DNA of 64,000 nucleotides from Dicyema japonicum. Taxonomy: Eukaryota; Animalia; Dicyemida. The notes under the pieces were generated by a model. The model had not been told where the DNA came from, searched no databases, and saw only the letters and a list, made by a program, of their open reading frames with translations. The position numbers were made by a program, and so were the translations under genes. The stretch is taken from contig RDEW01000043.1 of assembly GCA_011109175.1 (NCBI GenBank), positions 186,001 to 250,000 of the forward strand, in the 5' to 3' direction. Below, piece after piece: positions 7,451 through 42,600 of the stretch (position 1 is its first letter; each line of letters begins with the position of its first letter).

Positions 7451-7785
7451 GAACAAATCCTTTCCGACAACCTCCAAAAATCAGGTCTGACAAAGTTAAC
7501 CCTTTTGCAAACCCTTTTCACCTCTCCTGATTTAAAAGATAATCATTTTGAGTCCAATTTTTCAAACCTGAATATTGACCGCATTCTCATTAGTCCTTTT
7601 CTAATTAATATTTTACTTAAATCAGGCTGTTATGCACATGCTTTATTGGCATGGGGACGAGCTATGAAGTTTGTCTTGTAATCATTTTCAATGCCCACAA
7701 AGGAGGCCACTAATTCAATGAAAACTTTCCCTTGAAGAATTTTTGCCCTCTCTGATTTTCGGAGGTTATCGGAAAGGATTTGTTC
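7451..7785. repeat. 34-bp inverted repeat pair (7451-7484 and 7752-7785)
   Basis: GAACAAATCCTTTCCGACAACCTCCAAAAATCAG versus the reverse complement of CTGATTTTCGGAGGTTATCGGAAAGGATTTGTTC; two mismatches. Confidence 0.75.
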
Positions 7786-40020: not shown

Positions 40021-40381
40021 ATTATTATTAATAGGAATTTCGAAAAAACAATAATTAATTAGAGTTTTTCTTGTACCACATATTTGTATAGCAGTATGAG
40101 TAGGACGGAATCATTTTATAGTCTTTTACTGAGACTTGGACGTATCTCAGACATTTTAGTCTCTTCAGTACTCGAATTTAATTTTCTGGGGGTAAATTCA
40201 CTCTATTATAGAATAATGAAGGTTGGAGATTCAATTTATTAATTGATATTGACTAGTTTCACAGTGGTTTGGTTTTGGTTCACGAAATATTAAGGAATTT
40301 ACATTATGAACTAACCTAGATTGAAATATCTAAGGAAATAGACGAGTAAGGTTATTTTAGAAATAGTTTAATGTTAGTTTA

Positions 40382-42600
40382 TTAAAATCCCCAAGCTCAG
40401 CGTAGGCCAGATCCAGATTGGAGGCAATCTCCTTGTAAATTTTCTTCTCAGACATCAATTCCTCTAAAAATAAGATTAAGTGTGTTAGTGGTTAACAGGA
40501 ATGATAAATTAGAATAATCCGGGAAACGAATAGTTAATTATTATAATGAATTAATGTCCGCCATTGTAGAATCAAACAATTCTTGCAGTTCTGACAACTT
40601 AGACTTTTCAGTTTTGAGAATTTCTGTTAATAAAAAGTACTGTACTCTCTAGACAGATCACTTCGCTCTCGAGTTTCTTTTTATGGTTAGAAAGAATCCC
40701 ATTTTCATTATTAGACTAAATTAGTGGTTAGAATGGTAAAGTTAGTGAGGATTTATGCAACCTTCCAATCTATCAATATCCTGCTGTCGCTTATTGGACA
40801 CTCTATCGCATTCCGCAGCTTTGTTTTCGCTCTTAATTATTAATTTTAACCAAATAAGCGCTATTGTTCGCATATACCTCATACAACTCTTCCCTCAACT
40901 TCTTTATCGTCGCCTCATATTCCCTCCTCTTTGTTGTAGGCCTAAAATATAGTCAATTGATTTGTTATAGAAACAGGACTAGTAAGGAGCCGTGTTAACA
41001 AGGAAAGGACTCGTTAGAACAGTACCTCATTACTACTAATTTCAAGGGACTTAAGATTATTCCCTACTACTTTTAGCTCTTCTTCTAACTGGATCACCTT
41101 ACTATAATACAAATAAATTTTGATCTCTCTATTAAAGGGAACCGCCGCGGCAAATTACACCACTAACCAGGTTTGACTGTGACTGCAATGCCTTGAGTTT
41201 TACTTCTGAGTCATGTAACTGTTCATTTGTGGTAAGGATTAGTCTGGATCTGCAAAAATACTACCTTTCTTTATTTTCTAGCATAGTTTCTAGTTTATCT
41301 AGAGAATTTTCCATTGTTTTGTTGCGGTTGTTTAACTAAAAGTAAGCGAGCAAATATAAAACACCACTGCTACACCCTGACCATGCGGCGGTTCCCGCAT
41401 TAAATTTACCTTTCAGCTAATTCAAGGCGAGATGTCGCTCTTTCCAAGTCCACTTCGGTCACCATGAGTTTCCGACAAGTCTTGGACTTAATAGAAAAAT
41501 AACCTCGTCGTATTTGTGGTCACTATCGTCGGCAGTCCATTTGACATCCCCCAACTGTTTTTCCAGAGTGAATATTCTCTCTTCATCGTTTGTGGTCCTC
41601 GTTTCAAGTACTTTACGGATTCTGCAAAAGAATTAAGGGTCAGAGTGTTAGCAGTGGTTTTACAAAGGAAATATTAATATACGATAATTATTTCGGTTTG
41701 AATCTCCTGGTATGATTGCTGCAAAGATTTGAAACCACTCTCCAGTTTTTCGTTTAAAATCTCCAGTTTTTCGTTTTTATCGTAGATTACCTTTCTATGA
41801 CTATGATTAGTAGGATTTAGGAGTTGGGAATTACCGCTCAGAATCCTCATATTTTTCAATGTACTCATTGAGTAGATCTGTCTTTTCTTTCAGAGTCGTA
41901 TCGATCGATTCATTGCTTTCATCTAGCATTTGAAGTCTTCTATTCAATGACTGAAGTTCTAATTCTTTCTAAAATAAATAAATCATGTTGTAATAATTAT
42001 TGACAGCAAAAATATATCACGCCAATACATCATAAAGATCTTTTTTTATAAGTTCATTTTCCTTATAAATATTATTAAATTTATCCTCAAATTCATTTCT
42101 CTCATTCTTTAGAGATTCTATCTTATTTTTTATATTTTCCATTGAACTAATTTGCAATTCAATTGATCTACATTTATTCGCAATCTATTGCATTTTAAAG
42201 ATTGGGTTAACCATGCAAAAAAACTAATTATTTTTTAATTTTAATAATAAAAAACAATTTAATAAAATTAACCTCGCTTTGTTCTTTTAAAACATCATTC
42301 AGTTTACTTGAGACCTCGTTATACTTTTGGTCAAGATTTTCGAATTCAATATTCAAACATTTTTCCCGCTTAATTATAGCAGCAATTTCATCATCTTTCT
42401 AAAAAACCCAGATTAAATTAAAATTAAATAAAAATCAAATAATAATAAATCATATATTACTTATAAATTACCTCTTTCAACTGTTGTTCCAAAACCTCAA
42501 CTTTCGATTCAAGTTGATCTGCATTTTCTAGACATTCTTCCTTTTGCTGCTTAATTTCCAGAATTTTCTTTTTAAGAGAATTTAAAGTTGCCTCAGCCAT
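40382..42600 (-). CDS. Tpm: Tropomyosin with duplicated, mutually exclusive exons. Canonical set: 42600-42472, 42398-42273, 41968-41835, 41621-41504, 41480-41410, 41101-41026, 40941-40878, 40831-40762, 40463-40382. Divergent set: 42214-42212 plus 42184-42029, 41968-41835, 41800-41683, 41335-41265, 41243-41168, 40941-40878, 40715-40646, 40623-40541
   Basis: Exon lengths 126/134/118/71/76/64/70/82-83 nt and phases match the classical tropomyosin layout (exon 7 is +1 nt and the last exon -1 nt versus 63 and 83). Peptides SLNRRLQ, RKVLETR..NDEERI, RKLMVTEVDLERA, LEEELKVVGNNLKSLEIS. Confidence 0.92.
41137..41167 (-). promoter_or_regulatory. Intronic element Y (intron 6a-6b), perfect 12-bp complement of X2
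   Basis: 41137-41148 (GGGAACCGCCGC) and 41385-41396 (GCGGCGGTTCCC) are exact inverted repeats. Confidence 0.72.
41364..41400 (-). promoter_or_regulatory. Intronic switch element X (intron 5a-5b): X2 GGGAACCGCCGC, X1, and local hairpin ATGCGG/CCGCAT
   Basis: GC-rich island in an AT-rich intron; complementary to both U and Y. Confidence 0.7.
41638..41661 (-). promoter_or_regulatory. Intronic element U (intron 4a-4b), complementary to X1 (41364-41382)
   Basis: Transcript AAAACCACTGCTAACACTCTGACC pairs with GGTCAGGGTGTAGCAGTGGT (about 20 bp, one bulge, one G-U); contains a CTAAC branch-point-like motif. Confidence 0.7.

Follow-up and report, generated by a model that had tools for sequence, protein, structure and literature searches.

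Crossed Intronic Helices as a Candidate Two-State Splicing Switch in a Tropomyosin Gene of Dicyema japonicum

Introduction

What keeps far-apart splicing decisions of a single gene coordinated is an open question, and documented cases are mostly ascribed to transcription kinetics or trans-acting factors. A tropomyosin gene of the dicyemid Dicyema japonicum raises this question in a very small space. The gene lies on the minus strand of a 64,000-nt stretch of genomic DNA (contig RDEW01000043.1, positions 186,001 to 250,000; hereafter the window, to which all coordinates refer), and packs three tandem exon pairs, between exons 3 and 7, into about 0.9 kb. How might one exon of each pair be chosen in concert with the others? 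The compact locus suggests a purely cis-acting RNA solution built from four short intronic boxes. Here we argue, with a probability of roughly 0.55, that two crossed helices between these boxes select one whole exon set, either 4a-5b-6a or 4b-5a-6b.

Results

Downstream of exon 3 (134 nt, 41835–41968) and a 34-nt intron (41801–41834), the alternative exons follow in the order 4a | 4b-5a | 5b-6a | 6b. Exons 4, 5 and 6 each occur in tandem duplicate, and the two members of each pair agree in phase and in length (118/118, 71/71 and 76/76 nt), as is characteristic of mutually exclusive tandem exon pairs. The divergent copies are 4a (41683–41800), 5b (41265–41335) and 6a (41168–41243); the canonical copies are 4b (41504–41621), 5a (41410–41480) and 6b (41026–41101). 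Partner copies adjoin across the cluster borders. A 23-nt micro-intron bounded by GT and AG (41481–41503) links 4b to 5a, and a 21-nt micro-intron (41244–41264) links 5b to 6a. The former is not represented in the RNA contigs described below; the exon lengths on its two sides, 118 and 71 nt, match those of other tropomyosins. The three introns within the pairs are unusually long for an animal with ultra-short introns: intron U between 4a and 4b (61 nt, 33% GC, 41622–41682), the central intron X between 5a and 5b (74 nt, 45% GC, 41336–41409) and intron Y between 6a and 6b (66 nt, 36% GC, 41102–41167). An 84-nt intron (40942–41025) separates 6b from exon 7 (40878–40941). Near 40922, in exon 7, the window carries one extra G relative to most reads and to the RNA contig.

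Exons 1, 3, 4b and 6b match the Pfam Tropomyosin profile (PF00261) colinearly, at profile positions 2–37, 39–81, 85–122 (E = 7e-8) and 147–170 (E = 8e-6), respectively. All of these single-exon scores fall under the cut-off for the whole protein, which is expected for pieces. Exons 4a and 6a gave no match to this profile. The exon order and gene structure given in a preliminary description of the locus hold in the light of these assignments. In-register similarity between pair members exceeded that of shuffled sequences for 6a/6b (15/5,000 shuffles) and for 5a/5b (77/5,000); for 4a/4b it is weak (256/5,000), with 6 of 39 residues identical. The frame of 4a is open, and so are all eight combinations of the type 4x-5x-6x. 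The reading frame therefore does not enforce coupling. The earlier proposal that mixed routes are out of phase survives for the direct 4a→6b route, which is indeed out of frame, and fails as a general statement. Searches for relatives returned nothing usable: the exon 3 peptide had 0 hits among 1.84 billion protein representatives, a homologue search with the 57-aa frame containing 4b found no word-sharing homologue, and a scan of metagenome contigs produced 600 pattern matches with 0 confirmed.

Evidence from RNA comes from spliced contigs of one small, low-depth public run that behaves as spliced RNA; the four further runs retrieved resemble DNA. Contig 19 joins exon 3 directly to 4a (41835→41800); the 34-nt intron is absent from it and the start of 4a is fixed by it. 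Contig 18 reads 5b-6a→7, with the 21-nt micro-intron precisely removed and 6b skipped. The divergent exons 4a, 5b and 6a are used in mRNA, since all three are present in spliced RNA contigs. This observation removes the objection, raised in the preliminary description, that these exons might never be used. In the same low-depth run, no read or contig contained exons 4b, 5a or 6b or covered the 4a→5b or 5a→6b junction, and none bore on the choice between 4a and 4b, or between 5a and 5b, across a junction.

Four boxes in introns U, X and Y account for two long-range helices. The U box (41638–41661) is complementary to X1 (41360–41382). Where about 20 bp had been proposed, we find a helix of 22 bp with one bulged A and one G·U pair, extendable to 28 bp, with a stability of -37.1 kcal/mol; the complementarity consists of one block of 13 nt (92%) and another of 11 nt (91%). 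X2 (41385–41396, inside a feature at 41383–41400) is the exact 12-nt complement of the Y box (41137–41148), just as had been stated, and the two form a perfect 12-bp helix of -29.1 kcal/mol. Alternatively, X2 can fold into the local 6-bp hairpin recognized before, for which we calculate -9.7 kcal/mol. The branch-point-like motif CTAAC (41647–41651) does lie inside the U box and is covered by U:X1. It is one candidate 4b branch site, and one of its A residues is the bulge of the helix. A second candidate for this site, TTAAT, is found just 3' of the U box, about 12 nt before the AG. Finally, the sequence AGTGGTGT is present twice, at 41361–41368 in X1 and at 41157–41164 at the start of intron Y, as had been noticed.

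Along the RNA, the boxes follow one another as U, X2, X1, Y. Because X2 lies 5' of X1, with 2 nt between them, U:X1 and X2:Y cross, and a nested fold can contain only one of them. The former encloses 4b-5a and the latter 5b-6a, the loops measuring 241 and 215 nt, so that both are placed as the preliminary description had it for looping out these two blocks. The remaining lengths between splice sites and helix are approximately 18–24 plus 19–27 nt for U:X1 and 13 plus 35 nt for X2:Y. The exclusivity of the two helices rests on this crossing, that is, on a pseudoknot, and loops of more than 200 nt make the steric bar less than strict.

Folding of the sense pre-mRNA gave the two states that had been predicted. 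By default, U:X1 (p of about 0.8–1.0 over most of the helix) forms together with the X2 hairpin (p of about 0.9). The probability of X2:Y is 0 while U:X1 forms, and this helix emerges once the U box or X1 is blocked. Forcing X2:Y costs 8.8 of 204 kcal/mol. The z-score of the fold is -1.8 for the sense strand and -0.05 for the antisense strand. Long-range pairs between exons and introns in the MFE structure were disregarded because they depend on the ends of the folded segment. Constrained folds also contained a 12-bp helix of A-U and G·U pairs between the 4b-5a micro-intron and intron Y beside the Y box, which was not significant (z = -1.2).

Comparison with shuffled sequences and with the remainder of the window shows that the pairings are real and non-random. 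The U-X duplex has a z-score of -6.1, and 0/2,000 dinucleotide shuffles produced one as strong; the perfect 12-bp X-Y run appeared in 1/20,000 shuffles. U:X1 and X2:Y are the best two among the 91 intron pairs of the gene, and rank 2 and 3 among 2,187 seeded duplexes at 100–500 nt in the 64-kb window. The rest of the top duplexes in the window come mostly from regions of about 50% GC, and one of them has a reverse-transcriptase motif. Both helices are stronger on the sense (transcribed) strand than on the antisense strand. Even when up to 3 mismatches are allowed, X1 is unique within the window, and the boxes match no Rfam family (E up to 1), no tRNA and no dispersed repeat. Within the same 91 intron pairs, no comparable boxes were found in the likewise interleaved 8a | 8b-9a | 9b region, no helix positioned to exclude 4a, 6b or the 8b-9a block by looping rose above chance, and no such helix occurs in the 213-nt (3→4b) or 226-nt (6a→7) intron.

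Discussion

A two-state switch is a plausible model for how these helices may work. U:X1 would bring the 4a donor to an effective distance of about 45–50 nt from the 5b acceptor and would cover or abut the 4b branch site; 4a→5b splicing would therefore be favoured. X2:Y would reduce the distance between the 5a donor and the 6b acceptor to about 48 nt and favour 5a→6b. The helix that forms would pick the full set, 4a-5b-6a or 4b-5a-6b. We consider it slightly better than an even bet that the helices form in vivo, direct splicing and yield these two exon sets only. The trigger is likely to lie in the order of transcription, in which U comes first. If the branch-site region of U were engaged for 3→4b splicing before X1 emerges, X1 would stay free and Y could later open the X2 hairpin. 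If this region were not engaged early, U:X1 would form.

A more specific version is correspondingly tentative, and we would not bet on it. The 40-nt element in the central intron could be a bistable switch that couples three exon pairs and admits two all-or-none sets of the eight in-frame possibilities, with X1 serving as a decoy for the 4b branch-site region. Like U2 snRNA, such a decoy would pair with this region in such a way that an A of CTAAC bulges out. If this reading were true, the locus would provide the first RNA-structure mechanism coordinating exon clusters and the first pairing of this kind beyond arthropods and vertebrates. The locus would further illustrate how 300-nt introns can be removed, and exons skipped, by a spliceosome tuned to introns of 20–40 nt. 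If the prediction of two exon sets holds in publicly available RNA data, the gene would become a small, tractable model of structure-driven splicing coordination, and control of exon choice by competing structures would reach the dicyemids.

Some features of the locus speak against a switch. U is transcribed about 270 nt ahead of X1, which gives 4a→4b splicing a head start, and coexistence of both helices as a pseudoknot would promote 4a→6b splicing, which is out of frame. The skipping of 4a in the canonical route and of 6b in the divergent route is left unexplained by the model. Two results given above also count against it: the low-depth RNA run yielded neither the 4a→5b nor the 5a→6b junction, and the likewise interleaved 8a | 8b-9a | 9b region has no boxes of this kind.

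The alternative that survives best, although we regard it as unlikely, is that the helices are independent intron shorteners that do not compete. Each would help a spliceosome adapted to introns of 20–80 nt to remove an intron of 347 or 308 nt, and the choice of exon set would fall to other determinants, such as stage-specific promoters, trans-acting factors or the strength of the splice sites. The effective lengths after shortening do fall within the range of the ordinary introns of this gene, and loops of more than 200 nt leave steric room for a pseudoknot. There is also precedent: Howe and Ares, cited in PMC4691838, reportedly described in 1997 long yeast introns with stems that reduce the distance between donor and branch site. 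Independent helpers, however, would not need inner boxes that lie 2 nt apart in crossed order. Moreover, the 213-nt 3→4b and 226-nt 6a→7 introns have no helix, and 6a→7 is spliced regardless.

It is less probable still that the complementarities arose by chance, or were left over from the exon duplications, and play no part in splicing. They were picked out after the fact from a window that contains nine exact 12-nt inverted repeats at 100–500 nt spacing and about ten duplexes of -28 to -30 kcal/mol. X2/Y is nevertheless the sole G+C-rich exact inverted repeat of at least 12 nt at this spacing in the window, and the composition-matched shuffles reported above argue against chance for both helices. 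So does the placement of the boxes. The four arms fall precisely in the three within-pair introns, which are rich in A+T; both pairs adjoin in the central intron, and the G·U pair works on the sense strand only.

Competition of the kind described for Dscam1 exon 6, 14-3-3zeta and Mhc, where selectors compete for a docking site (Graveley 2005 and Yang et al. 2011, as cited in PMC4165533 and PMC4691838), would make U the docking site, with X1 and AGTGGTGT at the start of intron Y as rival selectors. The dicyemid locus shares with them long-range intronic pairing, which here would set which tandem homologous exon is used. In contrast to them, it has no docking site common to several selectors: U pairs strongly with X1 only, and X2 and Y make a separate pair. 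The preliminary description was right that AGTGGTGT is common to X1 and the start of Y. Its suggestion that both compete for U is rejected, since the U-Y duplex, with this sole candidate second selector, comprises only about 6 bp and is not above chance (311/2,000 shuffles, z of about -1). Pairing of U with Y would furthermore place the four middle exons in a single loop and lead to the out-of-frame 4a→6b junction. We consider this explanation very improbable.

Equally far-fetched is another use of the double-stranded segments, as RNA-editing substrate, small-RNA precursor or protein-binding site: 22–28 bp of dsRNA is sufficient length for dsRNA-binding proteins, but the Rfam search was negative, the single RNA run shows no A>G differences within the region, and arms more than 230 nt apart do not make a compact hairpin precursor.

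The preferred reading, selection of one whole exon set by crossed helices, has a close relative in insects. A central bidirectional element had been thought to be without precedent, which is wrong: exon 4 of Drosophila srp is controlled by bidirectional RNA pairing with exactly this crossed topology, and the pairing has been validated experimentally (PMC4691838; PMC6071210). Bidirectional pairing is also known in RIC-3, MRP1, hymenopteran Dscam exon 4 and lepidopteran Dscam exon 9 (PMC4691838, Yue et al. 2016; PMC6071210, Ivanov and Pervouchine 2018). As in srp, the dicyemid introns contain two separate complement pairs, U:X1 and X2:Y, each around one alternative unit. Both inner elements reside in the central intron, where the one that pairs downstream lies upstream of the one that pairs upstream, and simultaneous formation of the crossed helices is impeded by the pseudoknot. 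In srp, looping out leads to skipping and draws splice sites closer to each other; the dicyemid helices, predicted from sequence and folding, would do likewise. Unlike the srp loop, which holds one exon, each dicyemid loop holds two exons from two pairs together with a micro-intron. The outer exons of srp are constitutive, whereas 4a and 6b are themselves alternative, and the scheme would consequently couple three exon pairs. The distances involved also differ, with 60–350 nt between dicyemid splice sites in a genome of introns of about 25–40 nt. On balance, we favour viewing the dicyemid locus as the bidirectional scheme of srp extended to two-exon blocks and three coupled exon pairs.

Two other systems share single traits with this locus. 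In mammalian ATE1, the elements R1 and R4 compete for R3 in the control of exons 7a/7b, and a further helix spans 30 kb (PMC7797038). Common to both genes are alternative helices among several intronic elements, which in ATE1 govern one exon pair; the dicyemid gene differs in having two non-overlapping helices that span about 0.3 kb each. The lev-11 gene of C. elegans belongs to the same protein family and has mutually exclusive exons in several adjacent clusters, 4a/4b, 5a/5b/5c and 7a/7b, made up like those of the dicyemid of tandem homologous exons of equal length (118 nt and others) (PMC4165533). Coupling between clusters by RNA structure is not reported for lev-11 in that work, and in the dicyemid gene the matching copies stand back to back, linked by micro-introns.

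Exon Organization of the Tropomyosin Gene

The tropomyosin coding gene lies on the minus strand, from ~42600 to 40360. Colinear matches to the Pfam Tropomyosin profile cover exons 1 (profile positions 2–37), 3 (39–81), 4b (85–122) and 6b (147–170); the same profile search returned no match for exons 4a and 6a. Exons 4, 5 and 6 each occur in two copies of equal length (118/118, 71/71 and 76/76 nt), which follow each other as divergent 4a, canonical 4b and 5a, divergent 5b and 6a, and canonical 6b. This layout is expected from three tandem exon duplications, and C. elegans lev-11 is a tropomyosin gene of comparable design (PMC4165533). The unusual part is the intron pattern. Back-to-back partner copies are linked via micro-introns of 23 nt (4b-5a) and 21 nt (5b-6a), and the introns within the pairs are long for this gene set: 61 nt for U (4a/4b), 74 nt for X (5a/5b) and 66 nt for Y (6a/6b). 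GC content and intron sizes agree with Dicyema japonicum (PMC6736024; PMC13644364), the genome of which has 36.7% GC and a mean intron of 38 bp (PMC6736024). Exon 2 is seemingly duplicated too (42029–42398): copy 2a spans 42273–42398 (126 nt), and a second copy with an uncertain acceptor ends at 42029; a start at 42184 would give it a length of 156 nt.

Mixed splicing routes had been described as out of phase. This holds for 4a-4b and 4a-6b; all eight 4x-5x-6x routes have an open reading frame, so the frame does not force exon coupling.

Complementary Boxes in Introns U, X and Y

All complementarities claimed in the preliminary description are present. Box X2 (41385–41396) and the Y box (41137–41148) are exact complements over 12 nt, with a predicted energy of −29.1 kcal/mol as compared to −9.7 kcal/mol for a local X2 hairpin. 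The U box (41638–41661) and box X1 (41360–41382) form a single 22-bp helix with one bulged A and one G·U, extendable to 28 bp (−37.1 kcal/mol). The bulge is one of the two As in CTAAC (41647–41651), a candidate branch site for exon 4b. Since a second candidate, TTAAT, lies immediately 3′ of the U box, the claim that U:X1 covers the 4b branch site should be read as "covers or abuts". A shared motif, AACCACT(G/-)(C)TAAC, precedes the acceptors of 8b (40716–40730), 9b (40484–40496) and 4b (41647–41659), and probably represents the species' branch-site consensus, similar to yeast TACTAAC.

The U–X duplex between whole introns has z = −6.1 (0 of 2,000 dinucleotide shuffles were as good), and the perfect 12-bp X–Y run recurred once in 20,000 composition-preserving shuffles. 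The gene's 14 introns give 91 pairs, of which U–X and X–Y rank first and second, and none of the others stands out. Across the 64-kb window, U:X1 and X2:Y are second and third of 2,187 seeded duplexes with 100–500 nt spacing, and both are stronger on the transcribed strand. Other top-ranking duplexes lie mostly in regions of ~50% GC, one with a reverse-transcriptase motif. With nine examples in the window, exact 12-nt inverted repeats are not rare; X2/Y is the only G+C-rich one. The boxes matched no dispersed repeat, Rfam family or tRNA. The strongest mid-range duplex is a 34-nt inverted repeat (7451–7484 / 7752–7785; 94% complementary, arms 267 nt apart), which may represent small-transposon ends or another structured element.

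Folding of the sense pre-mRNA (821 or 906 nt) gives U:X1 with p ~0.8–1.0 over most of the helix, the X2 hairpin with p ~0.9, and X2:Y with p = 0. A separate fold of 41100–41700, proposed earlier as a check, bears out the same picture in MFE and centroid alike (z = −1.8 sense vs −0.05 antisense). X2:Y costs 8.8 kcal/mol when forced, and enters the MFE when either the U box or X1 is unavailable. Constrained folds also contain a possible 12-bp A-U/G·U helix between 41125–41136 (intron Y, adjoining the Y box) and 41487–41498 (4b-5a micro-intron), which is not above chance.

Along the RNA, the boxes follow as U, X2, X1 and Y; hence the two helices cross, and because of this topology U:X1 and X2:Y fold as alternatives. 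This crossing, absent from the preliminary description, is the actual basis for any two-state behavior. The connecting loops of 241, 2 and 215 nt make a pseudoknot with both helices sterically conceivable, so mutual exclusivity is likely but not guaranteed.

Comparison with Known Systems

A Dscam-type docking/selector system can be rejected because there is no site common to competing selectors. The preliminary description knew of no central bidirectional element coupling multi-exon blocks in a micro-intron genome; a central bidirectional element as such has been published for Drosophila srp exon 4 (PMC4691838; PMC6071210). There, both selectors reside in the central intron, the downstream one pairing with the docking site upstream and the upstream one with the docking site downstream; the authors mention a possible pseudoknot (PMC4691838). 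According to Ivanov and Pervouchine, the element that pairs downstream sits upstream of the other, and the pseudoknot impedes simultaneous formation of both helices (PMC6071210). The U:X1/X2:Y pair shares this crossed topology. In contrast to srp, each dicyemid loop holds two exons from two pairs, separated by a micro-intron, and the outer exons (4a, 6b) are themselves alternative, so that the scheme would coordinate three clusters, in a dicyemid-type genome with ultra-short introns. No account of neighboring exon clusters being coupled by RNA pairing turned up in the literature searched.

Possible Mechanism

With 4b-5a looped out by U:X1, ~18–24 nt would separate the 4a donor from the helix, and 19–27 nt the helix from the 5b acceptor; for 5b-6a inside the X2:Y loop, the corresponding distances are 13 + 35 nt. 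Either helix would shrink a 347- or 308-nt intron to an effective ~45–50 nt, a size routine for this gene's spliceosome, while hiding the enclosed exon block. Since U is transcribed first, the decision may be taken there. Engagement of the U branch-site region in splicing of exon 3 to 4b would leave X1 free, and Y could later displace the X2 hairpin; without such engagement, U:X1 would form. We infer this helix-directed route as the most likely reading.

Against a switch, the model does not explain why the canonical route omits 4a and the divergent one omits 6b, and the head start of 4a-to-4b splicing over U:X1 formation is a further objection, as is the lack of coupling by reading frame. The 3′ end (40360–40831) is likewise interleaved, as 8a (canonical-like, 40762–40831), 8b (40646–40715), 9a (with stop, 40541–40623; joined to 8b by a 22-nt micro-intron) and 9b (about 40360–40463). 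The comparison of the gene's intron pairs revealed no comparable or significant complementary boxes flanking 8b-9a, which also speaks against the switch. Exon layout and complementary boxes are confirmed; their interpretation as a two-state switch is partly supported, with good statistical and positional and partial RNA support.

Spliced RNA

The RNA support comes from one small public run, X5 (2017), which behaves as spliced RNA. In contig 19, exon 3 is spliced to 41800, which fixes the 4a acceptor and a 4a length of 118 nt. Contig 18 contains 5b, 6a after exact removal of the 21-nt micro-intron, and then exon 7, skipping 6b; its 16 "letters between" are exon 7, misaligned because of a synonymous and a 1-nt G-run difference. 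Therefore the divergent exons 4a, 5b and 6a are in use, and inclusion of 6a goes along with 6b skipping. The 4a-5b junction and exons 4b, 5a and 6b are in no contig of this small run, where contigs indicate presence, not absence. Four other, DNA-like runs contain no variants in 41100–41700.

The G run of exon 7 (40921–40924, minus strand) is one G longer in the window than in the RNA contig; all of sequencing run X1 also has the shorter form, as do X2 and X4 in part (run names unrelated to the boxes). Exon 7 as written meets a stop and is in frame once the extra base is removed; the cause is an assembly error or, alternatively, a haplotype with a frameshift. The synonymous C/T difference is at 40936. 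Downstream, the 6a-exon 7 contig retains intron 7-8a unspliced and extends across exon 8a plus another 4 nt (40758–40877). This stretch is either an unremoved 162-nt 7-to-8b intron or, since the reading frame stops 15 codons into intron 7-8a, an alternative short C-terminus.
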